Below, one piece after another: positions 4,220 through 46,247 of a stretch of 64,000 nucleotides of DNA. Both the position numbers and the translations under genes were made by a program. Position 1 is the stretch's first letter. Each line of letters opens with the position of its first letter. The DNA is taken from contig OX337237.1 of the NCBI GenBank assembly GCA_946965045.2, positions 1,736,001 through 1,800,000 of the forward strand, in the 5' to 3' direction. The DNA is from Epithemia pelagica. Lineage: Eukaryota > Protista > Bacillariophyta. The notes under the pieces are model-generated. The model saw nothing but the letters and a program-made list of their open reading frames with translations, was not told the DNA's origin and did not search any database.

Positions 4220-4425
4220 GTGAATCTTCACGGGTCTTTTAGTACAACATTTAACCGGACATTTGAGCTATTAATAAAATGAAATTGATAGTGCAGATTC
4301 TTCATGACGACATCGAAGATGTTTTCCCCTGTCTATTATCACCAGTATTGGTCATCAGTAGCATTATCAATGGTACAACGAGATCGGGTTTTGTATGATT
4401 TCGGAAGTTGAACAACGAAGAGTCA

Positions 4426-7092
4426 TCAGAACGGATTTTTTGTTTTCCATCCCTGGGCCGTTTCTTTGACGGCAGCTCCAAGTACACCCATGTTGAAGAC
4501 ATCATTTTCCTCGTAGATTCCTGGCCACATGGCACAATTGAGTAAAACCTCCAAGCTCGTTGCACTTCTTATGTCTTCGATATCAGAGCTATCGTCGTCT
4601 AACATGGTTTCTCCAAGGTGATCGATTTCAGGTTCGTACTCTGAGAAAGATGCAAGCATGGAGCTACCACTTTCGGTGTTCACATCTCTGTCATGGTCAA
4701 TTTCGACTTGACTGAAATCAACTAGAACTTCATCCTGTGCATTTATTCGCTCCCCGAGGACGTGGTCTTCTGATCCTTCACTCGAATCATTTGTGGTGGA
4801 CGAGGACTTCTCGACGACGAGCGTTCGAAAATCAGCTTTGTCAATTGCTTCTTTTGCATATGCCAACCAGTTCTGCGTGGTGGCACCAGGGGTTTCTTTT
4901 AATACCTGTCGTGGTGGTTCCTGCCAATCGCGCGTCTTTGTTTGAGCATAGTTTCTGGCTTTGGTCCACACCATTGTTTGTCCCGACTTATCTTTCGGTG
5001 ACGGTTCGTATATCTTCAATGAAGATTCCTTGGACTGCATCTCCATTGCATCTCCAACACCTTGTTTTTCTGCTTTTCGTTGTTTTCGTCGTCGTGGCGA
5101 ATAGCGAGTTATGCTCTCGATAGATTTCTTTTCAGTGGCCGAACTTCCTGAATGGCTGTCAGTATGAGATAGACTCTTGTACAATGTTTTCCTTGTAGAA
5201 CTTGTCTTGGAGGAACTTTTAGAAGCATTTCCATCTTCCGAGGTTTCATCATGTTTAGCTGTATCCAAGAATTTTGCTCCGTGCGAGGAGGACTCAGATG
5301 AGATCTTTCGTCTGATCGTTTTATCTTTCGAGACTTTCGTTTGGATCTCCACGGCATCCATCGTCCCCGTTTTTCGCTGTGATGTGTTCGGGTTCGGGCT
5401 TCTCCAGAAGTTTTTTCGTCTAGGGGTTTGCAGTGTCTCTGCTTCAGAAAAAAGAGATTGTTCTTCTTCTCGGAAACTTTCGTTTCCGCTCGTTGACGGA
5501 AGTCGACAGAAAATTGGTGTCCGCTTGCGTGGAGACAAACTTGTCGCCTTGCCGTCGTCGTTGCCTTTCGCAGAGAGGGGAGGAAGTCCACTTTTATCTT
5601 GTTTTGAATCCTTGCTGACCTTCACTGCGATACTTTCCGCTAAACGTATTGCCTTGCCGTCCTGGTTGCCTTTCACGGAGAGAGGAGGAAGTCCACTTCT
5701 ATTCCGTTCCGTTTGTCTTGAGCGGGCAGAAACATCCGATCTTGAGGCTTCTCTCAAAGCCGGACCATAATCGTCTTTATCGCAAGATGCTCTTTTCCGA
5801 CTATCGTCTTCCCATGAAGTAGCATTGAACTTGAGGTATGAACGTTGTTCCGAGATGTTTGGAATCTCTTTGGTTACATTCCTCTGCATGTCATTACTCT
5901 CGACCTGACTCTCACCAGTCCGCCGTCGAGCTAGCGATGAAATCTCTACGATACGGTATGGCACCTCTACGCCCTCCTCTCTACCCGGTGAGATTGGGGG
6001 AAATGGCACGGAATCTCCCTTGTCCCGGGCACGAGGTGAGTGCGACGGGCGCAAACCAGACCCCTCGGGGAACTCATCGACTTCTCGTAGAGCCGAGTTT
6101 CTCGGAGACCGGATTACCTTGGAGGCAACGCCTTCCTCCTTCATCGTCTTGATTGGAGCCGGATTTGACGATTCAAACGAGGCTTTCGCCGGTGCAATTT
6201 CCTCGTCCCTCAACGTAACGTCTTCTTCCTCGCCATGCTTTTCGGCTTCAGTAGATCCGTCGGAGTCGGCTGATACTTTTAGGTCTTCTTCTCGGTCTAA
6301 AGCCACTTCGGAGTGAACAACACTTTGTTCGTGTGACAGTGACTCTACCAAGAGAAGATCTGATACAGACCTTTTTTGATTGATCATGAATTCTTCTACG
6401 GTGAAGGTCTTTGCTTCGAGAGATGATGGATTCGGAACATAGAGCTCGTCATCCTCACCATCTGATAGATCTTGGTTTGTGCTGCATGTACTATAACTAC
6501 TTGATTCCACGGCCTGAGAAAACCTTTTGGGGACGACCGGAGGAGCTGATTGTTCAAGCCTTTCATTATCCTTCTTTTCGTCCAGAGGGGACAAACCCCG
6601 CACACTCTGGCTTTCAGCGGTCCTGCGAGGTGACGAATAGTGCTGTTTCGGCTTTGTCGATGCGCGTGTCGTCATTTTCACCCTTGTGACGATAGCTTTG
6701 TCTTCAATTTGACTCCTTGTTTTCCGAGAAGCACAATCGCTAACGGAGTCGTTTTGGTGTAACTTGGATGGGCTTTCTTCAAAGGACGGAGAAGAACTGT
6801 CGGAACTAGTGCTGTCGAGATTGATGGTGCGCTTTTCTTGTGCCTTTGCGTGATTACTTGAACGATGGACTGGGGCTTTCTCTGTTCGTTGGGTACGTCT
6901 TGGATACTCATCTTGTGTCTTCCTTGGAAGCCTGGAACGGGAACTACTCTTTAGTTTCGGCATCCTCGTTCTAGCGGTTGAGTAGGCTAAGAAGTCATCC
7001 TCACTCTTCCAACTTTTGCTGAACAGATCCAAGATATCATGATCACGGTTGCTCAGCTTTTTGCGCGATGATCCGACCAAATGACGAGGCAT
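4426..7092 (-). CDS. Large low-complexity Ser/Lys/Arg/Glu-rich protein of unknown function
   Basis: Uninterrupted frame 4426-7224; first ATG at 7092 (MPRHLVG...). No recognisable domain. Contains a duplicated motif SGLPPLSxKGNxDGKA. Confidence 0.7.
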   Translation of the reverse strand: MPRHLVGSSRKKLSNRDHDILDLFSKSWKSEDDFLAYSTARTRMPKLKSSSRSRLPRKTQDEYPRRTQRTEKAPVHRSSNHAKAQEKRTINLDSTSSDSSSPSFEESPSKLHQNDSVSDCASRKTRSQIEDKAIVTRVKMTTRASTKPKQHYSSPRRTAESQSVRGLSPLDEKKDNERLEQSAPPVVPKRFSQAVESSSYSTCSTNQDLSDGEDDELYVPNPSSLEAKTFTVEEFMINQKRSVSDLLLVESLSHEQSVVHSEVALDREEDLKVSADSDGSTEAEKHGEEEDVTLRDEEIAPAKASFESSNPAPIKTMKEEGVASKVIRSPRNSALREVDEFPEGSGLRPSHSPRARDKGDSVPFPPISPGREEGVEVPYRIVEISSLARRRTGESQVESNDMQRNVTKEIPNISEQRSYLKFNATSWEDDSRKRASCDKDDYGPALREASRSDVSARSRQTERNRSGLPPLSVKGNQDGKAIRLAESIAVKVSKDSKQDKSGLPPLSAKGNDDGKATSLSPRKRTPIFCRLPSTSGNESFREEEQSLFSEAETLQTPRRKNFWRSPNPNTSQRKTGTMDAVEIQTKVSKDKTIRRKISSESSSHGAKFLDTAKHDETSEDGNASKSSSKTSSTRKTLYKSLSHTDSHSGSSATEKKSIESITRYSPRRRKQRKAEKQGVGDAMEMQSKESSLKIYEPSPKDKSGQTMVWTKARNYAQTKTRDWQEPPRQVLKETPGATTQNWLAYAKEAIDKADFRTLVVEKSSSTTNDSSEGSEDHVLGERINAQDEVLVDFSQVEIDHDRDVNTESGSSMLASFSEYEPEIDHLGETMLDDDSSDIEDIRSATSLEVLLNCAMWPGIYEENDVFNMGVLGAAVKETAQGWKTKNPF

Positions 7093-7857
7093 TTTCCTTG
7101 ATGTTTTGGAAGGATGAACACACAGAGCTTTTGATTCAAACGGGGTGTTTCCTCTCTGAGTTTGTGGAGGTGGATACAGACTATTGTTTGAACGTTGTCG
7201 AAGAAAAGTGTGGACCCCAGCCAAGCGACGATCCCTGTTGTTTCTTGCTGTTGTGAGAATCGAGGTCGTCGGTGATGCCTAACAGTACGCCGCCCGGCGC
7301 ACAAGAATATGCTTGAAAATAAGCCCTGCTCTCCGCCGATTCTACAACGTCGACAATTAGCGGTGTGATGCGGTCGCCAATATGGCGTATCTGATGATAG
7401 AGAGCATGAATTATCCATCACATGATGGATATGACTGATTACTACAATAACTTGTGTAGTCTAGTGAGTAAAATATCAATTAATGAAGTATATAATATGA
7501 TGCAATATGATCATACTATATGATTTTCATTGATAATTTCCTCGCCTTCATCTCGCTTGCTCGGATTTCTGTTTTTGTATTGCCTTCTCCAGAGAGTACT
7601 ACTTACGTCTATATACGATGATATACACGACATCCACCATCCACGAGTGAGAGTCGCATTGGCGACGTTTTGGATTTTGGATTTGTCCGCAAACCTCAGT
7701 CCATGGTCCATGGTGGTACAAACAAGAAAACCGAAACAATCCACACCCGTTCCCCGTAGACCACAACCAAAGCAAGAGTCCGAAAACGTTAATGTTTCTG
7801 GACTCCCCTCCTCTCGCTTCAAGCTGAACTAGGGATCGACAATAAACTCAGAGTAGG

Positions 7858-8390
7858 ATGGTTGAGAACCACGAGAGCAATCCAGGTGCAAGTCAGCCTT
7901 TGTTTGAATTTCAGGACAAAAAGCAAAGAAACTTGTTCTATTCCCTCGTTTGGGTGTTTCTTGTTCTTGTGATTGTATTGCCATTGGGATCGTTCATTGC
8001 ACCTTTTTGGTTGGTTCTTCAACTCTTCGAACCCCTGTTGCCAGTCAGTAAGTGGACTGATAAGGAATTTGGTTTGATGTTGGAGCATCTATACGGCGCC
8101 ATCTAAAAACTACTGCCCACGTTTTCATTGCCATGGTATTTCTTGCATTAACCTTGAATCGACAGTCAGAGACGTGAACGAGCTGTTAGAAAAGTAAGAA
8201 TTTCTTTGTTGCTTGTTATTTTCGCGGGAAAACGTTCTCATCTAAATCTGCATATCTTCTTTTGATCCTTCAATTCAGACTTCTTACATGGCCGAGAAAG
8301 ATGGGCCTTGCAATTTTCGAAAGCAGAGAAACTTTTCCAAATCCATTTGAAACGGATTCCTCAAATCCACCGTCATCTGCTTCGGTCTAA
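7858..8390 (+). CDS. Small membrane protein, 3 exons (7858-8047, 8166-8193, 8279-8390), 109 aa
   Basis: Donors GTAAGT (8048) and GTAAGA (8194) with acceptors CAG (8165, 8278) give a 330-nt CDS. It reads ...LVWVFLVLVIVLPLGSFIAPFWLVLQLFEPLLPVIRDVNELLEKLLTWPRKMGLAIF..., ending TAA at 8390. Confidence 0.75.
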
Positions 8391-8942
8391 GCACACGGAT
8401 TATTTGGCGTATCGTTCCCATATTTGAAGTCCGTGGATGAGAGATAGCCCAGGCGGCATGGACACATTAAGTAGTGGCTGTATCGAGCGTGAGGCAATGG
8501 TTAGAATGGAATTCAGTTTCTCTTGTCGATCGTGCATTGTGGCGGCAAGAGCGAGAACCCGAGTACCTGCCCCCATTCCTAGCAAAGAACTAAGAAAGCA
8601 GCCTCTCTGTACATTATGCCTTCTTTTGTTTAGTGTCAACAGTCAAGAAAGTAGACGAGGTTGAGAGTTGAGAGGGCGATAACTTTGTGTAGTTGTAGCA
8701 GTAGGAGCATTTTTTGCGACAACTATACTTCCCACATACTATGGGAGTATGGGACACGGGACCCAGCTAGTGGAACCCGCTGATGTCTTGCGGGATCGCA
8801 AATATCCCACATCATGATGAGACACAAGTCTCGGAAATTCGCTCCGGTTGTCTCTTGACAATGGGCTGCGACCTGCGACCTAACTGTCTCAACTCCTTCG
8901 AGAGATTTTGCTAGCGACTGTCCGTAGACCAAGGTACCAACA

Positions 8943-10906
8943 ATGTCACAGGAATCAGTTGGGAGAGATGAAGTGAGCGGAGAGCAGAATCGGTTAACCC
9001 AAGACTCTCAAGGTTCAGCCCATGAATCGCAGCAGCATACATCTAGTGGGTCCACGACACGTCTCAATACCAAAGATAGAAACGGCGATGATTCTTCAGT
9101 ACCTCCTGGCGTGAAAAGAGAGAGTGTTCAACTTTCGACAAGCAGCTTATCGAGGTCTTATCCTTCTCATTCACAGTATGGGTCATATAATTCACCACCT
9201 CCTGTTTCTCCTCAGGCAGATTTGGGCCGTATGCATACAAGAATGCACCCTGGTCCCCATGACCTTACATCATCAGCATCATCGGGATTTGAAAACGAGA
9301 GCCCTCCTTCTTCTTTCGGACAAACCACTTTTTTAATGTCAGCAGGAGCCGTTTTGGGATTGACGGCGGCAGCTGCTGTGAGATGGTTGAATGGAGGCGA
9401 TTTTGCTATCTTCCCGGATTCAGCATCTTCTTCCACTGGAAACACTAGTATCGGCCTGAGACCAAAAAGCTCTCCATTAGTTTCGAATCATCACATTGAT
9501 CCTCAATCAGCTCCCGATATTCGCAATCGCAGTACCGGCCAACTTTCCGACTCGCATGATTTGTCGAACCAGGATGAAAGCGTTTCCCGTCAACTTCACG
9601 AGGACATCAATAGCTTGGTGATGCTCTCCGTGATCAAAGTAGGCAGCAGGCATCGTTAGTACAACAATTGGTTCGTCGAGATGGCACTCGATACGTCGAC
9701 CAATCCATGGACTTGTTGAGACAACAACAGCAAGCAAGTGGAAACAGACTCAACCAAGAATCCATGGAAGTTGTGCATGGAGATGAAAACGGTGGGACTG
9801 GGATCCGGACAAACTTGAACATTATACTAGACCATGTGACGTATCTTCAACAAAGTTTAGAAAACAGGGACACAAATGGGAATTCTCTTGACATCGAAAG
9901 CTTCCAGATGCGCCTAAGCGATATGAAGAAAGTACTGGAGTCTTGCATCGACAAATCGACCACAGCAACAAAGGTATCGATTTCAGAAAAACCGTGCAAC
10001 TCGGTCGTATCTTTTGGTCCCCCTTCAGCAGTTGGATTGACACCCTCTAAACTCCAAATTTCTGCAAATCTTGAAGAAGCGGTGGTGACTGCGATGCCCA
10101 TCGAATATTCTGGTCTAAGCAGCGCGGCAGGACTGAATGCACTTGATGCGTCCTTACAGAAGCTCTTTGAACAGAACTCACATGACATGTTGCGTGAAGG
10201 AACCCCCCTTTTGTATTTGTACGTCAGCAACCTGGAGAAACATCCGCTTATGCCAAGATATCGCAAAATTTTTACAAGCAATGAAAGTTTTCAGACTAAA
10301 ATTCAACCGTTGGTTGGCGGAATAGATCTCCTAAAAGCTGTCGGATTCACGGAGATGGAATCTAGTTGGCAATGGTTACCGGCTGAGAGTAAGAGTGATG
10401 CTCATGACCACCCTGAACACCAAAAACAGAGGGAAGAAGAATATTTGGAATACTTGAGAGAAGCTGCCAAGGCCCTGAAAACGATGCAACAACAACTCCC
10501 TCCGAAGGAGAGCGAAGCAGCGCCATTCCCGTGCTCGCCCTTACGTGTTGGACTTGAAAGCCTTTCGAGAACAATATCTAGTCACGAAAAGCTTCCTTCC
10601 GATGCATCGAGTTCATCGGTCGCTGCTCCTTTGAATGATGCGTTGCGAGCCGCACTTTTGTGTCCCCAAACACCTGACCCCTCAATAAAATCACCACCCA
10701 TCCCCAAAAAACAGATTTTCATGAATGATGACGTCCATGACGAAGGCTCTGGCAAGACGTTGCCAGTTGCTGTTGAACAAGACGGTTCATCAGCAGGCAT
10801 TCCGTGTCCCTCGTTTTCAATACGGGGACAAAATAAAAGCACTGGGGTGATCGAAAGTGAAGAAGCTGTAGAACTAGATGAGACGACGAACGCACTTTGG
10901 AAATGA
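8943..10906 (+). CDS. TM + coiled-coil + PUB-domain protein, split by a 1-nt frameshift at about 9619
   Basis: ORFs 8943-9659 and 9668-10906 join as LHEDINSLV/DALRDQSRQQASLVQQL if one base is restored. Hydrophobic segment AVLGLTAAAAVRWL. PUB signature LYLYVSNLEKHPLMPRYRKIFTSNESFQTKI...GGIDLLKAVGF. Confidence 0.75.
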
Positions 10907-11503
10907 ATTTCAGATTGGTAGTTCTTGCTGGTGACTTAGTCCTTCGATCAAGTTTGTTACGAAACGCCTCTAGAAGCGAAACATTAAACGGAACAACGTG
11001 GTAATTTCCCCTCCCGCAATACAATGGATTGGCCCACAGTCCGCGCATTCCCAGCATGCCTTGATCTGGGGAGCTAAACATTATTCTGTCTGTTTCATTG
11101 GCTATTCTGTAGCAAAACAAGCCACAACCTTTTTGTCGTCTGTGTTCTTGTTCGACAAGAAGTGCTCACTAAGAGTAGGTAACCTTAGCTGTCTGATTCA
11201 AGGGATAGCAGTTTTGATGCGTACGTGAACCCTGACAAACACCACTCTTAAGCGGCTATTCTGTATCCAGAAGGTAGATTTTACGTTGTTCTTTCCGTAT
11301 CTATCGCTGGGGAGTGAAGTATGGTGCAGCGGCAAGAGTGACCAATCACGCCATCACGACAAAGGACAGCAGCAGCTCTGATCTGAGATCCTCGAAGTCA
11401 AGGAACTATATCTAGAGCCGAGGACTTGGAATACCCGAGTTCAAAGGGAAGAGTTCATAAAATTATAACAAGTCAGCGATTCAGGGTGAATTAGCTATCC
11501 AAT

Positions 11504-12289
11504 ATGTTGACAAGTCGTATCATGATGAATCGAGGCCTTTTGAGGTCTTCGAACGTTCGCTTGCTAACAACAAACCTTCCGGTGACCGCGAAGACATCAG
11601 TTCATGACGATGGCAACGAAGTCGCTGTTTCCTCTGTCGCCGAGAAATCCAAAAGGATGCGTCAGGATGATGCATTTTTGGTCAAAGGACCCACCGGTGA
11701 AGGAGTCCCTGCCCCGATTCTTCCCGAAGACCCGTCTGAATTGTCATACATGGATCCTGCTGATCTGGAAAACGAAGCGTCAAGATTCAAAATGGATGGG
11801 TCACTGCGAAAGGTAGTAATTCGCCAAGAACCGAAAAGTGCTCGCCAGGCACCGATTGATAATGAGTATTTCTGGCACATCAAATTTGATGAAGATGGTA
11901 GCAGTGCTGAAAATTGGAATAATTCCCTAATGGGCTGGAGGTCAAGTGGGGATCCGTATCAGACCGGTCCTCCTTTGCAGTTTAACAACGCCGCTGAAGC
12001 GGTTTATTTCGCGAAAAAACGTGGTTGGAAATATGTTGTTGAAGAACCGATCATGCGCATTATGGGTGACCTCGAGCAACAGTATCAGGACAATTTCTTG
12101 CCTCAAGCTATTGCTGCTCAAGTGAAAACGGAAGGAATCAATTGTCGTCATTGGGAACGATCTGCGGCTGGATCCTCGCATTACTTCCGGCCCCTCAAGT
12201 ACCATGGAGATGGAACCGTTCGACAGCATGGAGCCAATCGTGAAGGCGAAATTGCTCAAGGTGTGCCGGGATACTACAAGAAGAGGTAA
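11504..12289 (+). CDS. NDUFS4: NADH:ubiquinone oxidoreductase subunit NDUFS4 (complex I 18-kDa subunit)
   Basis: Arg-rich mitochondrial presequence-like start; motif WNNSLMGWRSSGDPY...LQFNNAAEAVYFAKKRGWKYVVEEP...YQDNF. Confidence 0.9.
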   Translation: MLTSRIMMNRGLLRSSNVRLLTTNLPVTAKTSVHDDGNEVAVSSVAEKSKRMRQDDAFLVKGPTGEGVPAPILPEDPSELSYMDPADLENEASRFKMDGSLRKVVIRQEPKSARQAPIDNEYFWHIKFDEDGSSAENWNNSLMGWRSSGDPYQTGPPLQFNNAAEAVYFAKKRGWKYVVEEPIMRIMGDLEQQYQDNFLPQAIAAQVKTEGINCRHWERSAAGSSHYFRPLKYHGDGTVRQHGANREGEIAQGVPGYYKKR

Positions 12290-33979: not shown

Positions 33980-35241
33980 ATGAAATCTTCACCGCCCAAG
34001 ATATCAAAGCGTACCATAGAACAATTGTGTGATTCGGTCAGATCCAACCCGGTAACCATAGTGGTTGGTCCGACCACTCAGGTTCCTCAGATCTTGGTGG
34101 ACCAGTTGGGTGGTCGCATTCTTTCCACTCAGCCACGTCGTTTGGCTGTCGTCGCGGTTTCTTCTCGGGTGGCAAAAGAGCGGGGTGTTCTCTTGGGAGG
34201 ATCGGAGGTAGGATATCATGTGGGACAGTCCAAGAAGGCCATGTCATGTACCCAGCTCTTGTTTGTCACCGCTGGGCTCTTCCTGGAGCATCTGTGCTCT
34301 TACGGTGTCAAGGAATTGCTAAAATACGAGGCCATCTTGATCGATGAATGCCACGAACGATCCCCCGAATCAGATTTGGTCTTGACCATTATTCGATCGT
34401 TTCTGATCCGCTATGCTGCCTCTAAGCCTATTCGAATTGTTCTCATGTCGGCAACATTTGATCACGCGCGATACAAGCAATATTTCAAGTCTGTTGTACC
34501 TGGCTGTGATCACATTGCGACCATCAATCTCGAGACTGCGGCGTCTTTTGAAGCCTTTCATGACAGTGTCAGAATTAACTACCTCGATGATATCTTTCAA
34601 CGCATCCCTTACCTTGCCAGCCGACATGAGGAATTTCGCCGTATCAACAAAATCAATCCTGATGAAGAGCTAATGGGAGACGATGCGGGGAAGTCACTGT
34701 CCAAACGACTTGTCGAGTTTGTCTTGGATCTTGTTCATGGATTGCATCAGGAACAAGACTTGTTCATGAATTGCATCAGGAACAAGAGACGTCAAACCCA
34801 AGTGGAGTTTTTCTTATTTTCGCTCCCACTTACCGACATTTGGAGCAACTCTATCAGGTCTTGAAAGACAAGAGACAAGAGACCCAAGGAACCTCTCTTC
34901 TCGTGGAAATCTTCAGTTCTCCACTCTTCCGTAGACGTAGACCACTGTATGGAGACCATGGAACAGGATGGACAAACTGGTGAATCCTCTGTATCACCTG
35001 TTAGTCGCAAGATTATACTGGCGAGTGCAATTGCGGACTCATCCGTGACCATTCCTAATGTATCGGTTGTCATTGATTTATGCCGCGCTTTGGAAGTATC
35101 GTGGAATTATGAAAAGAAGAGACATATACCCAAGACTGTGTGGGCTAGTCATTCTATTTGCGATCAACGCAAAGGTCGAACCGGCCGAACATGTTCTGGC
35201 AAAGTATTCCGTCTTGTTCAACAGTCATTCTATCTGACTCA
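33980..35241 (+). pseudogene. 5' half of a DExH-box RNA helicase (DEAH/RHA clade), disrupted
   Basis: STQPRRLAV, VGYHVG, DECH, MSAT, ILASAIADSSVTIPNV and QRKGRTGR are present. Walker A lacks GxGK. A 29-bp duplication and a +1 frameshift break the frame, and the gene ends at the LINE insertion. Confidence 0.88.
35226..35241. repeat. Left copy of the 16-bp target-site duplication CATTCTATCTGACTCA
   Basis: Identical to 44309-44324; flanking bases differ on both sides. Confidence 0.95.
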
Positions 35242-35323
35242 CTTTTCGGCACCGCGCGGTTTTGGGAAGCTACACAGTAACTACTAGTAACGTAGAATTC
35301 TACGTAGTTCTGTACTGCTGACC

Positions 35324-37970
35324 ATGGCCGAAGCTACGGAAGGCTCCGACGTCGATTCCACCATGGATACTCACCCAACCAACACCAACACGAACTCCAG
35401 CGAACCCCAGGAACCCCCTGTTCTGTTCTCTGGCCCCGCCTCCCCTTGGTTCCAGTCACGCTGGCGCTTAGAAATCCGTCTCGCCAATGACACCAACCAT
35501 GCTTTCGATGCTGGTAAGTGGTAAGGCCTATCATAACTTTGTGTCTACCGCTCTCCAGGCGTTCCCCAACGCTATCCATTTTTGCACGAACGATGGATCG
35601 ATGTACTTCACGGAACAGTCTCAGATGCCGTCCCCTACCGATTACCACAACTATTTTCAAGGTGCGCGCTCCAGCAGGCCCGAACACGGGGCTTATCGCT
35701 TCTATATGGTTCTCGCTGTTCAGACCTACGGACTTCCGATTCAAGATATGAAGCACAATAAGCAGTTCCTAGAGTTCCTTCATTCAACTGACACATGGCT
35801 GACGTATCATAATCTCGATAGTTTGGACATCCAATCCGCTGGGTTCTTTACCTTGCGTCATCCTCACTGGACCTTTTTGGAAGGATTCCATTTCCGTGCG
35901 AAGAATGCTTTGAAGGACTACCTCCAAGATCTGGATATGGGTACCTTGTCTCCCGACCAAGTTGCCGCGGTCCGTCCCTACAAAGACCGTCATTACCCTT
36001 TGCCGCCGTTCGATCTCTGCATCCAGAACGTCCGGGCATACTATTCTCGCTCCTCCCAGCAGAATGATTCGAATGCCACAGGCAAACCTCAAGCCAAGTT
36101 CATTTCGGCCGAAGCTCTGGAGTTCCGCTGCGCCCGGGCGCACATTGACCTCTTTAATTGTCTACTTGATGGCGTTACCTCCAGAGACATTTGGTCCCTA
36201 GGTAGATTTGCATCGTATCAACTTCGCCGTGACAGCGCCGACCACTTCCGCGCATGTGTATCCGAACAAAATACATTCTTGCAATCGACATCCTACATTC
36301 TGCTCCAAAATGTGGACCGAATTGTTCTCGATGGTATGATTTCCGTGGATCACCTCAATAACATCCCTGGCTTTGAGGATGCGATGCATTCTATTCCCCT
36401 TCGCGGCCTTCTCCTCACACTGAATGGCTCAGACACCGATGACTCAAAAAACACGCCCCGATTTCTTGCCTTGGAACCGGAAACTCGCTATGGTTCGTGG
36501 AAGCTTCTTTGCCCAAGCGCAAACTTGCAGGCTAACAGCGAATGGTTTGACGATCATTTTCTCCGTCTGTATACAAGTGTCCAGACGTATGCCGCCCTAC
36601 CAAGCCACTCTGCGTCTCGCCAGCCGTTCCGAAGAGCCATCCGATCAGATCGCCACGCCCGTATTGCTCAGATGGAAGCAACTGGACTCAATATGGACCT
36701 CCCGAAAGGCACCCATCGCCCGACGCAACGAAAACCAATCGTCAAAGTCATGATTGATCAGCAATCATTTCCGGAGTTAGTGAATCCGTGGCAACCGATT
36801 TCCAACCCAACGGCTCCTCCCCCATCACGCATGAAGAAACTTGGCAAACTAAAGAAACAGGTCTCCTACGCGGACGCAGTGACAGTTTCCTCCAATCAAT
36901 CAACGGCGCTCACCTCTGCTACTACTACGGTCACGAACGCATTGGAGACTAAGGTTCAACAGCTGGAAAAACAACTTACCGACCAAGCCGATCAGTCTAA
37001 ATCCTTGCGTCAGGAATTATCTTCACTCAAGGCCACAGTAACTGAACAGGCGGCACAACTGACCACGGTGCATCAGGCACAAGAGACGGTTACGAACACC
37101 CAAACCGAAATGCAGCAACAAATCGCGACCATCCATCGTACGCAGACGGAACAAATAGCCCACCAGCACCAAGTTTCTACGGCTCTCGACCGTATCTTCC
37201 ACAGGTTGGATTCGGTTGTTTCCCAACAACAATTCGAACAATTGACGTCCCTCCTCCAGCGACAACAAATCCAGTCCAATATTCCAGCTCCAACTCCCAG
37301 TCCCCAACAAAATACTGGCGATACAGCCGCTCCACCTTCCCTTGCCACCAACACCACAGCTCTGGCAACCGCGGATACTCCAGCTCGGACTTCCAGTCGT
37401 CCTCGCGAGGCCACCACCTCCGATGACCCCGAGACCAATAGCCCACCTCACAAGCGCACATGTCCTCCAGCCCTTTCTCCGGATACTCAATTTGCGCTCG
37501 AAAATTCGTCCCCTATCCACGTCCCGGACGAAGCCCCAGCAATGCCCCAAGCCAGTAACCAACCACCAGCTCCAACAGCTCTTTTTCCCTCGGCTCCCGC
37601 TCCCCAAGCTCCATCCCAAGTCAGTCCCACCCCAGTCTCTGCGTCGGCCAACGCCGATCCAAACAGCTCTTCCACCCAGGACCCCACCACGGCATCAACC
37701 ACGCCGCCTCCAGCTCCGCCAACTCGTATTATGGCTCTTCGGAATGATATCGCTAGAGAGGTGCCAAACCAGTCTCGGCCATCCAATGCGATTATCAACC
37801 CCTATACATCCCACAGGTCTTCCAGCCAGAGTAACCCCCGGATCCAGCCTAACCGTGACCGTGCCGACAACACCCCAAACGGCCACTCCACTAGCCAGAC
37901 CGGGCCAACCGGACACAACAGTGCTCCCTGCCCACCAGCGGCACCAAACCCCCAAAGCAACCGACCTTAG
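35324..37970 (+). pseudogene. LINE ORF1 (Gag-like), frameshifted by a 7-bp duplication TGGTAAG at 35512-35525
   Basis: ATG 35324 in ACCATGG context. Removing one TGGTAAG copy joins ...FDAGK to AYHNFVST... Long coiled coil (ALETKVQQLEKQLTDQ...) and Pro-rich tail. Confidence 0.8.
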
Positions 37971-38151
37971 TGATCAATGTGATCACTTCCATCCATCTCC
38001 ACCCAGTCCACCACCATCGCCTCCACCAGCACCCGACCCCTCACCCCCACGTATCATCCAAACAAGCATCCATGACTTTCCAACTTACCCAACACCAAGC
38101 AACACCAATGATTCCTGGGGCGACCCGTGTCTGCCCAAGGCCGAACATCAT

Positions 38152-41100
38152 ATGCGCATATACTTCCAGAACATAAATGGTTTGAAGGCAGCCTCGGATT
38201 TTAGTCACGTCCAAACTCTTGCCATCACAGCACTTGGCGCTGAGATCGACGTTCTCGGATTGGCGGAAACAAATATAGACTGGCGGCACCGCGAGGTAAA
38301 CCACACGATCTTTCGGCAATTCAACCAAGTGCTTTAACCTTGCACCCTGGCTACAGCAACCACCAATATCCGTTACAACACATACTACAAGCCGGGGGGC
38401 ACCTGCCTATTGGCGCATGGCAATTGGCAGCCTCGTTGTCGCCGTCTTTCCGACCCGATGCAGATGGGACGCTGGTCTACCTTACTCATCCGTGGCCGTC
38501 ATCGCAGTAAATTGGCCATTATTTTGGCGTACCGAGTATGCAGTCAGGACCCAAGTCAGGCGGGCGGGCGCACAGCTTACATGCAACAATGGCAAATGTT
38601 GCGAACACAGCACCCAAACTGCACCCCAGATCCACGTCGTCAATTTTTCATCGATCTAAAGGCAGAAATCGCACGGCTAACAACCGAGGACTACGAAGTG
38701 GTGGTTATGCTAGATGCGAACGAAAGCATGTACGATCGGAATAGCAACCTTCTCCAGTTTGTCCAAGAGAGCCAACTGACAGATTTACATCTCCTTCGCC
38801 ACTCGGCCATTCATTCCAACCCACCAGGTACCTACCAACGAGGCTCCAAACGGCTTGACTACATTTGCGGCACCAGGCTTATCGCGAATTGCACTGCACG
38901 GGCGGGCATTTCGGCGTATCACGAGTACTTCTCGTCCGACCATCGCGGTCTGTACGTGGATTTGGATGTGAATCAATTCTTCGGCGGCCAACCGACGCCC
39001 CTTGATATCACGGCCACTTGCCTTCTTCATTCCCACCGTATTCAACACGCTATGGCCTATCGATCCCACATTCTAGAATATTCACAACAGCATAAACTGA
39101 CACAACGTTCAGAGGCACTCGAACAGCTCGCTTGTACCGACCCATCACACCCCAGCATCCCGAAGATGCTCAATGGCATCATTGAAGATTTAACAAGAGG
39201 AATGCTAGCGGCGGAAAAGAAGTGCGGGGCACATCACTCCCATCCTTGGTCCCCCACCCTGGTCAATGCATGCCGCCGAGTTCGTTTTTGGAGGATTTGG
39301 CTTTCCGAACTCAGAACAGGCCGTTCCTTTTCGAATGAACGGGCCCAACTGGCATCCGAGGCTCAATGGAAACCTCCCGAGATTCCTATTCCGCCAACCC
39401 GCCGGATACTCATACGCCACCTCCGCCAAGCCAAAAGCCACCTCTCGGAATGTGAAAGAAAAGCCGTCTTGTTACGCGAGGAATTTTTAGAAGAGCGCGC
39501 TGAATATTGGGCCAAGGTTCTAGACCAAAAGAAATCCGCGGTTCTCGCCGGTCTCCATGGAGTCGAAACCATCCAACGAGTTTTCTACAGATTCCGCACT
39601 ATGCTACGGAAGCACCAATCTGGAGGTGGCCTCGCGTCACTCAAGGTCCCTATCACGGATGACAATGGAGTTCCAACGACCGAGTACGAATGGTTACACG
39701 ATCCTGACGAAATCGGGCCTCGATTGATCCAACGTAATCTCAACCATTTTAGTCAAGCCCGTGGCCCGTTCACACAAGGTCCGGTTCTCGAATGTCTGGG
39801 ACGCAACGCCGCCCATGGCCAGCACGGTATTCAGAAGGCACTGGCACTCACTGACATTACACCAGCCACCAAAGCATTATTGGGTCAACTCCAAGGCACT
39901 CCATTACCCCGTATCTCCAATACCATCACAGGAGCCGACCTCCGCCAGAAATTTCAACGGTGGTCAGAATCGACATCTACGTCACCAAGCGGCGTTCATC
40001 TCGGCCACTACAAATCGCTGCTATTGCTTGACATCAAGAAACCAGACAGTGCTCCGGCTGCCCAGATGGCCCACCAACCCGATTCAGTAGCTACGTCCAG
40101 GGCGAATCAAGACCGCAGTATTAGCGACCAGATAACCACCCACGACGATTCATTGACTCAAAGCGCTCCGGCCTTCAATAGTTGCGCCCATCTTTTTGAT
40201 GTAATGGGCCACGCATTGACCGCCTCCTTCAAATCCGGTCACGTGGCTGACCGCTGGCTGACCGTCCACAATACTATGCTAGAAAAGGACCCCGGAGATC
40301 CCAGAATCGATCGGCTTCGAGTAATCCATCTTTTTGATGCGGTATGGAACGCCGGCCTTGGCATTCTCTGGTCTCGTCGTCTCATGCCTCAATGTGAGCG
40401 TCACTCTGCCCTCCATGAGGGACAATGGGGATCCCGGCAAGGAAAAAAGCCATCGAATGTGTTTGCATCAAACAATTCACATACGAAATAGCGGCATTTA
40501 CAAGGACCGACCTCGTTACCTTTGACAATGACGCCAAATCTTGCTATGACCGCATCGTCATGGCATACGCCCTCGCATGTTGTATCCACCTGGGACTTCC
40601 CGAAATGACAGCCGTTGCATTCGGGAAGTTTCTCGACGAAGCACGCTATCACGTCAAGACGGTTTTAGGCGTCTCCAGCGACTCCTACTCGCACGGCGAC
40701 GACGACAAGGACCTTCATGGTCCAGGACAAGGCAGCCAACCTGGCCCATTTTTATGGGCAATAGAGTGTTCTCAAATCATGGAGGCCCTAACAAAGCATT
40801 TTACTGGCGTCAATCTATGCACACCAGACCGCGAACTACAAATTGCTCAAGCACTCCAAGGCTTTGTCGACGATGTTGCAAACGCATCATCCAAATTCCA
40901 AGAAACTTTACACCATTTCACCGAATTCACGTATACCGAAGAACAATCCCAGCAATTCTTACACCTTCTAGTCCAGGAGGCCACTGAGATGGCTCAGTGG
41001 TGGGAAACGCTTTTATGGCACTCGGGTGGACAACTCGAGTTCCGTAAATGCTTCCTGTACATTCTCCACTGGACATTTGACCCGTCCGGCATCCCTCTTC

Positions 41101-44100
41101 CTGCTACCGTAGATCAACTCAAGGCCATGGGAATCTCCGTGTCTCTTACCAACAGTGACGACAACACTACGACGGAATTACGACACATGGACTGTTCAGT
41201 GGCAACCCGCACATTGGGCTGCATGGTCGCCCCTAACGGATCTTCCAAGCTTGAAGTCTCTCACCTAGCGAAGAAAGGCCACCGGTTGGGTGTTGCGTTA
41301 GCAGTGAACAAAATCAGCAGAAAAGCCTCACGTACCTTCTATCGTTCTATATTTCTCCCATCGATGACATACTCTCTCCCCAGCACTCATTTATCTTACA
41401 AAGACTGTCAAACAATACACAAATCCTCGACCGACCAGCTTTTGAATTCTCTCGGATTCCCACGGAATTTTCCCCATGCACTTACTTTTGCTCCTCGGGA
41501 ACTTGGTGGCGTCGGTTTCACTCACCTTTGGGTGGAACAAGGATGTCAACACCTTCATTCGATTCTGCTCCCGACCCTCCGGGGCCAACCGAATATATTA
41601 CGCAAAACATTGGTGATTCTACTTAAATGGGCCCACCTTTTCTCTGGATTCATCTTCCATCCCTTGCAAGATGTTGACCAGCGCATTCCATATCTTCCAA
41701 GTGGCTGGTTCCAGGTTACCCGCGACTTTCTCGCCGAGAGTGATGCCTATCTCGAGCTCCCCGAAAATGAATTCCCGACACCCCGACTACTTCGAACTGG
41801 CGACTCAAACTTGATGGAAACGGCATGCCGAGGCAAATGGACCCCACGAGAATTGATGCATATCAACAATTGCCGATTGTTTTTGAAGGTTCGGTTCCTC
41901 TCCGAGGTTTGCACGCTGTTGGGCGACGAGCTCTACGCGCCTTGTCTTACCGGCGGCTCACCAGCTTTATCACAACCGCCTGCTACGGAACTGTGGCCCA
42001 TTCAACAATGCCCAGGCGAGACCCAATGGGCTCTATTCCGTCGATTTTTACGCCATACATACTGCCGTCATCATCGAACAAACAAGCTCAAAGATACACT
42101 TGATAGCTGGTTACCTCATTCTACTACAAGACTATGGCCGGCCTACTATAACATCACAAATGATCAAGTTCTCATTCGGTGTCACGGCGGAACCTATCTA
42201 CGATATCATACTTCTGGTTGCGGCGTAACAGCGCTCTATGACAGAACCATCGAAGTCCCCATTTACCCTATCATCTCCCAACTCCCAGCCAACTGCTTCC
42301 CCACACGAGTCAATTGGCCCCGCCGTATGTGTGCCATCCCCCCGGTCTTCAACTACGACGGGACATATGATCCAGGACCACCACCACCCGGCCTCATCGA
42401 CAGTTTCCAACATCAACACCCCCATTTTGAGGATTTAGAGTTCGTAGTACAAGAAACTGGGCAACAACAACTATTTTCGGCCTTCAATACTGCGGTCACT
42501 CTTCCCGAGGTTTATTTCGTTTGCGATGGAGGATCTCGGCCCCCGACGGGCTCTTTCGGATGGGTGATAGGCGACGAGCACGATGAATGGCTCAAAGCCA
42601 ATGGACCAGCTATGGGCTGGCCCATGTCGTCGTTCCGCGCGGAAGCATGGTCGATTTGGAACTTGTTGAGCTTCCTCCGTCACCTGCTCCTCCATCACGG
42701 ATTCCAAGGCAACCCCATCCAAATTCTTACCATACACACCGACAGTTTAAGTTTTATTCAACGATTCCAAGAATTACAGTCCTACGGCGAACTGTGGTAT
42801 TCCTCAATCTACATGCGCAAAGACATCGACATCTTCACCGAAATCTTCGCCACATTGCGCACGTTCCCGTATTACATTCAATTCGAACACGTCCCAGGTC
42901 ATCAAGACAACGAAGTCAGCTATTATTTTCTTTCAAGACCCGCCCAGCTCAATGTTCAGGCCGATCTTATGGCCACGGCCGCTTTGGATCGCCAACCACT
43001 AGGCCACCGACCAACCATACCCTGGCTGCCCAACACGAAAGTACGCCTCGTTACCGCTGCACACGGTCCCCAAACAGGCGACGAATTGTCAACACTACGC
43101 AAATTGTTTCCCGGTAAACGACTAGCCTCGTATTTCCATCACAAATTCGGGTGGAATGATGCGGCCCACCAACTCATTGACTGGGTCTCCTTCGAACAAG
43201 CTACTGCCAAGACCGAGATTTCCCGTACCTTCCTGGCCAAACTCCTCGTAGGCTGGTTACCCACCAATTCTCGGCTATCCCGCTACGAGCCCATCTCGGC
43301 CCACTGCCCAAACTGCCCCTGTGATGAGACGCAGACCCATCTCTATACCTGCCGCAGCTACAAATGCTGGCGGGATGCATTTCGCAAGAACATAGACGAT
43401 ACAATGCGGACTCTCTATACCGAACCAAGTCTCCACAACCATATCCTCCAATGCATCGATCACTTGCTTATCTCACCGCGACCCGAACCACCGGCTCCGT
43501 GTCCTGACGACGACTTAAATGACTACGGCGCGATGCTACTGTTTCGGGGTTTCCTCCCTAGAGGATGGAGCGTCCACCAGACTGCATACCTGGCCGATCA
43601 CCCGCATATCACTAATCAGAAGCACCCTCCTCCTCCATGGGCACCCACCATGATATCTCATCTGTGGTACGCCAGCAAGGACCTATGGTTCCAACGGAAC
43701 CAGACTGTACACAAACATACCAACGAGGACAGACCCCACACCCGCCGCCGTCTCGAAAACATGGTTCGCCAACTGTACCGAGCTGGCAATACACTCAACC
43801 ATATTGACCGTGCTCCGTTCGAACAACCACTGTCACAACGTTTAACTTCGTCATCTACGGCCGAACTTCGAGATTGGCTGACTGTTATGGGCCCAGTCGT
43901 CGCAGCGGGCCAGAAACGACAAACCAACCAGCAATATCTCCATACACCAGACATCCGACGATTTTTTCCCACCGTCGCAACGAACAAATCCTCTTGCGGA
44001 CCCAGGACGGCCCACCCTCGACACTATGATGGACGACTTCCACCACAACAAGACATCATTCGAGCTTATTTTCCCTTCCTACGACACTCTACTTCCAATT

Positions 44101-44141
44101 CAACCACCAACACAACAGGGGACAACAATCACCCGTCCTAA
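38152..44141 (+). pseudogene. LINE ORF2: AP endonuclease, reverse transcriptase, RNase H, CCHC-like finger; in-frame TAA at 38335-38337 and a -1 indel in A6 at 40443-40448
   Basis: APE: YFQNINGL, LAETN, PGGT, MLDANE, RLDYI, SDHR. RT: LEKDPGDPRIDRLRVIHL, DAKSCYDRI, GQGS, GFVDD. RNase H: CDGG, FRAE, TDS, HVPGHQD, NVQADLMA. Finger: CPNCPCDETQTHLYTC. Confidence 0.92.
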
Positions 44142-44308
44142 CTAACCGTCCAATGTCATCCGCTCCCTTGTCCCTTGTTCAGTCCAATTCCTCAACATTC
44201 TAATCCCCTAAACCCGTCGCTCAGGCCGCGGTAGACGATTCCCCCTCATGTATGCCATAAGATTCGGATAGTCTTAAAAAATAGAAGTTACTTATATATA
44301 TATATATA

Positions 44309-44324
44309 CATTCTATCTGACTCA
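44309..44324. repeat. Right copy of the 16-bp target-site duplication
   Basis: CATTCTATCTGACTCA directly after the (TA)8 tail. Confidence 0.95.
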
Positions 44325-46247
44325 TTTGCAACCCTACGAAACGGCACAGTTGACTCTGTCAAGTTGCCGTGATGAGGCGCTCAAATTGTTGTGCTGTGCA
44401 TCCAAAATTCTCACGACAAACAACAACCAGAACCTCCTCCTAGATTGTCTTGATCCACCTTCTGAACCTGTGCTGGATCAAGCGTTGGAGTATTTGCAAG
44501 GAATTGGAGCGTGTACAATGAACCGTCGTGAAGTTCCAGAGCCAACCTCGGCAGGAAAGCTCATGGTGGCGCTATCCTTTCCTGTAGAAGATGCCTACAT
44601 GATTTTGACAGGCGGTAGATTGGCGTTGATGCATGAGGTTCTAGCAGTACGAGCGATAGCCACACACAAACCCATGCCTATTATTCATCATTTTGGAGAG
44701 ACTCGGCAGAATTATGACATTCTGTCTAGGTTTCACCCCGATGTTCAAATGAATCAGCCTACTTCTGTCTTATTGGCCCATTTGGCTGCATTTTTCTACT
44801 GGGACAGAACTTGGAATTCAAAGAGGTGTCAAGCAATGCTGGAGCAGTTCTCTGTCGCAACGTCACGAAACATGGATTTGGATGGTGAGGATCCCAACGT
44901 GACTATGTCACCCATTGATGTTCCATCTACGGAGATGACTCCGTACATGAACGGCGTCGTTTCCAGTGCCAATCCATGCTGCGATGTGGCTAAATGGACC
45001 GTCGAACTCGAAGCAAAACACACAGAGTGGTGCGAACGGATGGAAATCAGTGCAACTGCTGTTCGAGGCATTGCAGAACTCTTTGCCAGTTCTGTCAATG
45101 TCTTTTACCGCTCGGATTTCGAACCAGCGTGGCTACGATGCAGTCAGCCAACGCCTCATTGGCACTGCAATGGCTTGTCTTGTGATAAAGAAGAACAAGA
45201 TCTGGCAACGCTTCAGGATTTGCCTGAGTCAACCACCGCCATGTTCTTAAATGGAACCTATGGTCATTCACGAGGCAAAGCCCTCGTAGGCTCCTAACAG
45301 CACTGTGCGATAATCCGGCCTGGGCTTCGCAGTATGCATCCAGTCTAAGGCCGTTGAATTCCCAAGTTTCGGTGCTTTCTTCTCCACCTCCGGATGGAAG
45401 AATGGCGTGCATCCATTTCCTCCGTGGAAATTGCCAAAATGGAACAAATTGCCGGTTTTCACACAACGTCAATGCAACTCGCCCCCCTTGCAAGTACTTT
45501 TTACTTGAAACATGTAGAAAGGGCAGTGCATGCATGTTTTCCCATGAAATACAGGACCCACGTGAGATACGCTCTCAGGTTGCGAGCAACCCGTCTCATT
45601 TATTGGATGCAGTTGCTCCATCTCTCGAGTCCCTTGGCTTCAAAGGAGGCGTGATATCGTGGTACTTGAAAGAGTTTCCCTCTAACAATACACTACTGCT
45701 GAAAGACGCGTGTTTTGCCTTTACGCAGTCTTTAATTACTCTTGGTCACACTCCCAGATTCGTATCTGATTTTTCGACACAGGTGGGCGGCGCAGAACAT
45801 CCCAGGGAAATCGGTTCAATTTCGATACTTTATGCCAACCCAAGCCGTCTCCATACGAACGAGCAGGTTAGACAGCTGCTCTTTGAGATCCAAAACTTTG
45901 TTTGGATGTTTCCGTCCACAGAATCCGAGGAAGATGACGGTAGCCAAGAGTCTCTGGTATTCGCAACGCTCTTGAGTCTCGCTCAGCTTGCTCGCACGAA
46001 ACATGGCTTTAGTATGAGTTTTGGTGTTTCATTCCATTCCGACCAGTTTTCTCGATGGAATGTGCTAAGAAATGCTATTCGGTTGGGTTGGAAGCTTAGT
46101 TCCTGGGAAGCATTTGAAGTCAGTGACTTTCCCAACTTCAAACCCAGAGGAGGAGACAGCGGTAACGAAATGATTGTTCCCGAATCTTGCCGACTTTATC
46201 GCTTCATATACGACGCACCAGGGAGAATCGAACTTGATTTAAACTGA
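44309..46247 (+). pseudogene. 3' half of the DExH helicase: HA2-like region, two tandem CCCH zinc fingers, C-terminal domain; probable 1-nt frameshift at about 45278
   Basis: FYLTHLQPYETAQL resumes the helicase frame. CLDPPSEPVLDQALEYLQGIGA and AGKLMVALSFP are HA2-like. Fingers: CIHFLRGNCQNGTNCRFSH and CKYFLLETCRKGSACMFSH. Confidence 0.85.

Follow-up and report, generated by a model that had tools for sequence, protein, structure and literature searches.

A full-length LINE of a diatom-wide family in a helicase coding exon of Epithemia pelagica

What is the 9-kb stretch that parts a helicase coding exon in the diatom Epithemia pelagica, and how did it get there? The locus lies on contig OX337237.1 of assembly GCA_946965045.2; the window, i.e. 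the whole stretch of DNA analyzed here, comprises 64,000 nucleotides (positions 1,736,001 to 1,800,000). According to our analysis, a full-length diatom long interspersed nuclear element (LINE) was very probably inserted by target-primed reverse transcription into a gene for a DExH/CCCH helicase; it interrupts a coding exon and points the same way as the gene. The element is a well-preserved, ordinary member of a diatom-wide LINE family. With ends defined to the base, this copy can serve as a reference for a family that is spread widely among diatoms and that ordinary domain models largely overlook, and it is useful for the annotation of transposable elements in diatoms.

Insertion site and element boundaries

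The element is framed by a target-site duplication (TSD), and the host gene continues on either side. Copies elsewhere in the genome are named by their contig; the window copy is on C10.

33980-35241, + strand: upstream part of the host DExH helicase (DEAD-box and Helicase_C; matches to PF00270 and PF00271)
35226-35241, + strand: 5' TSD, 16 bp, exact match to 44309-44324
35242-44308, + strand: full-length LINE, 9,067 bp, with termini common to the C13, C9 and ENA ctg1349l copies
44309-44324, + strand: 3' TSD, 16 bp, exact match to 35226-35241
44325-46247, + strand: downstream part of the host helicase with tandem CCCH fingers; the open reading frame (ORF) 44326-45297 continues the frame

Within the window, the 16-bp word CATTCTATCTGACTCA is found at 35226-35241 and at 44309-44324 and nowhere else, even if one mismatch is tolerated; two matches were reached in none of 100 shuffles. 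Since the copies of this repeat are 9,083 bp apart, the insert measures 9,067 bp. The host ORF 34949-35287 runs into the 5' repeat at codon position 2, and the 3' repeat exits in identical phase into the host ORF 44326-45297. Because both repeats share the codon phase, excision of the element and one repeat restores the reading ...QQSFYLTH-LQPYETAQL.... Motifs V and VI of the helicase (QRKGRTGR...FRL) stand just 5' of the insertion in ORF 34949-35287; the site is about 12 codons past motif VI and parts the helicase core from the CCCH-bearing C-terminal region, whose two fingers are matched by zf-CCCH in ORF 45354-46247. The locus is a clean example of exon disruption in a host gene.

Most of what an earlier note on this DNA had claimed about the site is borne out by these results: an exact 16-bp TSD, an insertion in a helicase coding exon, a helicase frame that rejoins upon excision and a 3' end consisting of (TA)8 (44293-44308). 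Its statement that the ends can be defined to the base is likewise supported, as the same termini recur in the full-length C13, C9 and ctg1349l copies, and the 5' terminus CTTTTCGGCACCGCG... is also found in a fragment on C1. The note had further described two ORFs in the sense direction of the helicase. The orientation is correct, with every ORF of the element on the + strand, the same as the helicase, but two clean ORFs are not present, ORF2 being in three pieces. No long terminal repeats (LTRs) or terminal inverted repeats (TIRs) were found in the element when terminal repeats of at least 20 bp were looked for, and the whole element has no Rfam match at E up to 1, i.e. no known ribozyme or 3' element.

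Domain architecture of ORF2

ORF2 encodes an apurinic/apyrimidinic endonuclease-like domain (APE), a reverse transcriptase (RT), an RNase H and a zinc knuckle:

38152-44141, + strand: ORF2 (APE-RT-RNase H-CCHC), mapped by pairwise alignment to intact copies
38170-38941, + strand: APE (Exo_endo_phos) endonuclease, PF03372 on the intact C13 copy
40069-41928, + strand: RT with fingers, palm, thumb and an N-terminal extension, from an AlphaFold2 (AF2) model, Foldseek and the family profile
42525-42965, + strand: RNase H domain, from an AF2 model, Foldseek and conserved acidic residues
43305-43352, + strand: C-x2-C-x7-H-x3-C zinc-knuckle motif, conserved in relatives

Counted from the Met that opens the APE domain, ORF2 comprises about 1,995 codons. 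In the window copy it is split in three (38152-38337, 38338-40491 and 40425-44141), and the intact ORF2 of the C13, ctg1349l and C9 copies extends over 2,297 codons from stop to stop. Pfam returned nothing at E 0.01 for the four long ORF pieces of the window, and phmmer gave no match of ORF2 to the PDB. Because the whole-ORF Pfam scans were empty, the domain claim required other evidence, which was drawn from the naturally intact ORF2 of C13, cut into domains, and from a family profile built from 47 relatives.

The N-terminal 297 aa of the C13 ORF2 match PF03372 with 31.1 bits against a cut-off of 24.5. In the PDB, the APE region of the family profile matches chains of APE2, ExoIII and APE1, and the catalytic columns N, E, D/N, D and SDH show little or no variation among the relatives. 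For the RT region, the AF2 model has a pLDDT of 90.7, and the top 14 Foldseek matches are all R2 or human LINE-1 (L1) ORF2p (E 4e-17 to 3e-13); DRT and group II intron RTs rank next, about 10^5-fold worse. The family profile matches the R2 RT in the PDB at E 2e-6 and does not match L1. Both the Asp of RT motif A (40530) and FVDD (40863-40874) are invariant in the family. The RNase H region was modelled with a pLDDT of 88.9, and its best Foldseek matches are bacterial and archaeal RNase HI (E 4e-7, probability 1.00, TM 0.6-0.7 on the target). The codons of its catalytic acids D, E, D and D begin at 42525, 42642, 42741 and 42963; conservation of these residues (D1459, E1498, D1531 and D1605) reaches 90% or more in 47-49 relatives. 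On the C13 ORF2, Pfam RVT_1 scores 16.9 bits, below threshold, and the RNase H-like Pfam matches are below threshold as well; both domains have diverged too far to be picked up by the Pfam models.

Further downstream, the zinc-knuckle residues C1719, C1722, H1730 and C1734 are invariant in 47 relatives and are followed by a Trp-rich C-terminal region. The 260-aa tail past the CCHC motif has neither invariant acidic or Lys residues nor a Pfam match and appears to hold no recognisable restriction-like endonuclease (RLE). RLE-type LINEs are distinguished by a PD-(D/E)xK endonuclease after the CCHC motif and by the lack of an APE, which the present element possesses. Its characters are those of an APE-type LINE, namely a LINE-type RT, an N-terminal APE, no LTR or TIR, variable TSDs, truncated copies and a simple-repeat tail, and the RNase H 3' of the RT with its DEDD residues is that of the RNase H-bearing LINEs. 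The APE-RT-RNase H(-CCHC) architecture downstream of a long ORF1 is thus genuine; the earlier note had named the element as such a LINE, and this order is now confirmed by Pfam for the APE and by AF2 and Foldseek for the RT and RNase H. Between the APE and the RT (38950-40060, about 370 residues) the strings PWSP, RNxxHFxQAxGTPFT and ESTSTSPSGxHLGHYKAL are strongly conserved, and no Pfam family matches this interval.

Sister copies and their insertion footprints

In the genome (60.5 Mb, 23 contigs), just ten copies are detected by a 96-nt probe taken from the 3' end: three are full-length (window, C13 and C9) and seven are 5'-truncated, ranging from 51 bp to about 3 kb. The C13 copy is 98% identical to the window copy, the C9 copy 66%. 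A third young copy, full-length and 98.4% identical, is located on a public contig (ENA ERZ21939226:ctg1349l, 2497-11557; L049). The TSDs are as follows:

Window copy (C10): 16 bp
C13 copy: 17 bp, with 17 extra nt at the 5' junction
C9 copy, full-length: 14 bp
C8 copy, 5'-truncated: 11-14 bp
C18 copy, 5'-truncated: 16 bp
ctg1349l copy: 17 bp with one mismatch

The genome-wide search for sister copies, which had been proposed as a check, yielded ten copies, all with (TA)n tails; if the ctg1349l copy is included, TSDs of 11-17 bp can be read at six insertions.

The empty site of the ctg1349l copy is preserved in the present assembly, where the flanks abut at C2:3105257-3105273 with a 17-bp overlap and a flank identity of 99.5-99.9%. 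Of the two public assemblies available for this organism, only one contains the copy, and the ctg1349l contig and the C2 locus are a filled/empty allele pair. This copy sits in another repeat of about 1.35 kb, of which there are at least 10 copies at 84-99% identity. Some 5' junctions show additional bases: about 17 non-templated or foreign bases separate TSD and element in the C13 copy (L027 483-500), an extra A is found at this place in the C9 and ctg1349l copies, and an extra TA in the C18 copy.

Conserved 3' end and proposed mechanism of insertion

All ten genomic copies share the 3' end of the element, which consists of a 3' untranslated region (UTR) and a short-repeat tail:

44142-44292, + strand: 3'UTR, conserved and covarying among copies
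44214-44274, + strand: structured part of the 3'UTR, a hairpin (44214-44231) followed by nested stems and an apical hairpin
44293-44308, + strand: (TA)8 tail, the last 16 bases of the element

About 90 nt of the 3'UTR are kept in 10 of the 10 copies, despite bodies that differ by up to 34%. The nested stems pair 44233-36 with 44271-74 and 44240-42 with 44266-68, the apical hairpin 44245-50 with 44256-61. In these stems 95% of cells are paired, compared with 25-43% when partners are slid, and compensatory changes occur in five of the six apical pairs. The covariation amounts to 0.143 versus 0.061 in shuffles, none of 500 being as high. This supports a conserved RNA structure that the 3'UTR would carry. 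The tail is (TA)n in every genomic copy, with n from about 2 to 8, and a relative from a sediment metagenome (L060), whose RT is 46% identical, ends in (TA)7. The family is thereby shown to use (TA)n tails together with a conserved 3'UTR structure.

What is observed directly (domain content, exact ends, TSDs, 5'-truncated copies, tail and 3'UTR covariation) can be joined to a mechanism whose steps, i.e. the activity, the recognition of the RNA 3' end and the order of the nicks, are taken by analogy from L1, R2 and I elements. The APE would nick the bottom strand at the left edge of the future TSD, and the 3'-OH released in this way would serve as primer for copying the element RNA into DNA, starting at the (TA)n end. 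To recognise this RNA, the RT probably relies on the conserved 3'UTR hairpins beside the tail, as in the 'stringent' type. A second nick, in the top strand and 11-17 bp away, would give rise to the TSD, and removal of the RNA template would fall to the RNase H domain. 'Stringent' LINEs of the L2/CR1 type, e.g. UnaL2, recognise a stem-loop of their own 3'UTR. The present element resembles them in the covarying hairpin directly 5' of a short-repeat tail; it differs in its clade, and recognition by the RT is only inferred here.

Relatives and clade assignment

A word-based search finds 65 relatives and a profile search 85, typically of 1,800-2,200 aa. All named relatives are from diatoms (Fistulifera solaris, Fragilariopsis cylindrus and Epithemia clementina), the remaining ones from marine or sediment metagenomes; Atlas neighbours of the element are likewise diatom clusters. 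Within the genome, at least 65 more RT matches occur at 30-33% identity, with ORFs of up to 2,063 aa, and many of these clade copies have open frames of 1,900-2,063 aa. The window element is thus part of a ten-copy subfamily within the major LINE clade of this genome. No outgroup LINEs appear in the word or profile searches, the weakest listed match being at E 2.5e-94; their absence is partly due to the way in which the word-based search selects candidates. One relative-bearing metagenome contig (JGI, 11,589 bp; L062) has about 110 nt that are identical at its start and near its end, which could be a tandem arrangement or terminal repeats.

What is more challenging is the assignment to a described clade. 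The earlier note had placed the element in the Repbase clade Ambal, whose members it described as long and as carrying both APE and RNase H; the name, a Russian slang word for a hulking man, would be apt for elements of unusual length. We consider the chances about even that the present family belongs to this clade. In a diatom genome paper, 'LINE/Ambal' is reported in Pleurosigma, with a relatively high share, and Ambal is listed as protist-only; in the open literature it was found in name lists only. The occurrence of the element in protists including diatoms is compatible with Ambal and not diagnostic of it. In favor of the assignment are the size of the clade in this genome (the additional RT matches mentioned above) and the fact that all named relatives are diatoms. 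Furthermore, the RT form matched by the profile in the PDB, R2-type and not L1, would fit the early-branching RT implied by the RepeatMasker form 'CRE-Ambal', which is used in one paper. The same label, however, groups Ambal with RLE-bearing kin, and the present element has an APE and no recognisable RLE. The assignment is judged here by name and description.

Somewhat short of an even chance, in our estimate, is the view that the family is a diatom-restricted APE-RT-RNase H lineage outside Ambal, either an unnamed clade or a deep branch similar to I, Ingi or Tad. The order APE-RT-RNase H-CCHC and the short-repeat tail recall the I group, the Pfam models RVT_1 and RNase H fail on the element, and the searches return only proteins of diatoms and marine metagenomes. 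The last point is tempered by the missing outgroup matches being partly an effect of the search method. A more specific proposal appears rather unlikely, namely that of an undescribed, deeply divergent, diatom-restricted clade other than Ambal that escapes the standard RT and RNase H models, is characterized by (TA)n and the covarying hairpin, is the dominant LINE group here and is still transposing, as the hemizygous copy and the intact ORF2 would indicate.

The I group (I factor, Ingi/L1Tc, Tad1 and LOA) shares with the element an arrangement of two ORFs in which an RNase H follows the RT and a Cys/His motif lies close to the C-terminus; TSDs of variable length and 5'-truncated copies are common to both. 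The tail of the I factor consists of short TAA repeats and not of poly(A). In contrast to this group, the ORF2 of the element is roughly twice as long (about 2,000 aa), the tail is (TA)n, and ORF1 has no Pfam-detectable CCHC or RRM signature. The RT model finds its best structural counterparts in human LINE-1 ORF2p and R2 (E 1e-13 to 4e-17), with fingers, palm and thumb all included in the match, yet their sequences are just 10-14% identical to the RT of the element. L1 shares the N-terminal APE, but is without RNase H and uses poly(A), whereas R2 has a C-terminal restriction-like endonuclease and is site-specific.

ORF1, coding state and age

The 5' part of the element and the lesions of the window copy are located as follows:

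35242-35323, + strand: 5'UTR, kept between subfamilies; 0 differences in 81 nt to C13
35324-37970, + strand: ORF1, frameshifted here; the other copies use the frame that starts with the ATG at 35324
35512-35518, + strand: lesion 1, a 7-bp tandem duplication (TGGTAAG) and ORF1 frameshift; without counterpart in C13, ctg1349l and C9
38335-38337, + strand: lesion 2, a TAA nonsense codon inside the APE; AAA (Lys) in C13 and ctg1349l, AAG in C9
40443-40448, + strand: lesion 3, a 1-bp deletion in an A-run; one base fewer than C13, ctg1349l and C9

The 5'UTR is unchanged relative to C13 (81 nt) while synonymous divergence is about 5%, and it aligns with the 66%-identical C9 copy and the C1 fragment. 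In the window copy, the frame of ATG-35324 ends after 66 codons, and the rest of ORF1, 827 codons (35487-37970), is open. The layout of ORF1 comprises a conserved N-terminal region of about 500 aa, a coiled-coil-like stretch and a P/S/T-rich tail; the 1,244-aa ORF1 of L060 is homologous (E 9e-34). For the window copy and relatives, Pfam yields only sub-threshold, coiled-coil-like noise and no known domain for ORF1, and the ESM Atlas search with ORF1 gave no usable match. The first 36 bases of the LINE, 100% identical, are also found fused to unrelated sequence at C10:3389171-3389206 (minus strand; L024). About 660 bp beyond this junction, an ORF starts with a Cys/His-rich stretch resembling a BED-type finger. 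A template switch may have produced the junction, or it may belong to a chimeric element.

Judged from its sequence, the window copy is coding-dead: ORF1 has a frameshift, and ORF2 has a nonsense codon and a frameshift, the latter just 5' of RT motif A, where the frame moves from 38338-40491 to 40425-44141. Hence the copy is complete, as the earlier note had it, with regard to its full-length ends, but its coding capacity is broken by three lesions in ORF1, the APE and the RT. ORF2 is uninterrupted in two sisters of 98% identity, C13 and ctg1349l. In three of the four full-length copies, ORF1 is broken within the same 14 codons (equivalents of window 36395-36450), by TGA in C9, TAA in ctg1349l and a 1-bp deletion in C13, and the window copy reads through. 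We read these breaks as probable lesions at a mutable A-rich spot, odd as their clustering is. A programmed stop or readthrough in ORF1 was considered but set aside as the main interpretation, as the 1,244-aa ORF1 of L060 is continuous across that point.

Window and C13 copies differ at 173 sites (1.9%), mostly synonymous, with a dN/dS of 0.20 in ORF2 and 0.06-0.26 in ORF1 (pS about 0.05), and their UTRs are nearly unchanged. Therefore, most of the divergence arose in active lineages under selection, and decay after insertion amounts to about 1% at most for both copies combined. The subfamily is, as these comparisons suggest, one that was active very recently. The strongest sign of recent activity is the ctg1349l copy: since its site is filled on the public contig and empty in the present assembly, the movement of the family is very recent, and the allele pair documents this for the subfamily within the species. 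The insertion in the window had been called fairly recent; its youth is supported by the 98%-identical sisters, the purifying selection and the filled/empty pair of the sister copy.

Several observations weigh against our interpretation of a recent LINE insertion or complicate it. There is no clear nick-site consensus among the six TSD-defined sites; three of the TSDs start with CA(T/A), and four sites precede GA. All three young copies have an ORF1 lesion, hence no fully intact copy was seen. For the window insertion an empty allele was not found, the products of three neighbouring genes leading to a single public contig that is identical to the window. Finally, errors of assembly could in principle account for the A-run deletion and the 7-bp duplication, but are a less likely source of the TAA substitution.

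If all three lesions were errors of this kind, the window copy would be coding-competent. We regard this as improbable. A homopolymer length change and a short tandem duplication are indeed of the types that assemblers produce, but the nonsense codon is a base substitution, and lesions are common among the sister copies. In addition, the gene calls of the public contig ERZ21939226:ctg1359l end at the same positions; as this contig is identical to the window over 23.5 kb, it probably does not count as independent evidence. The notion that there is no insertion at all, but a very long intron or a misjoin of two loci, is hardly credible: nothing was found in its favor, the boundaries read CT...TA and not GT...AG, the exact TSD falls at termini set independently by other copies, the host ORFs are in phase on either side, and a filled/empty allele pair is known for the sister copy.

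State of the host helicase

For the host gene, the helicase sides up- and downstream of the LINE were searched separately, and no paralogue that reads contiguously across the site was found; the nearest helicase is 37% identical and aligns just to the insertion point, the alignment of the C3 paralogue extending up to ...FRLVQQSFY. The helicase is without the Walker A motif GxGKT, where it reads ...VVGPTTQVPQ..., the Pfam DEAD match spans only the second half of the model, and the frame changes twice between about 34780 and 34950. From these features the helicase looks impaired already. Unless introns are involved, its defects probably predate the insertion, because the LINE is so little decayed, and the LINE may have landed in what was already a pseudogene. 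As the helicase already looks impaired, the functional consequence of the insertion is probably small. The frame changes between about 34780 and 34950 adjoin a near-duplicate of the string TTGCATCA(A/G)GAACAAGA.

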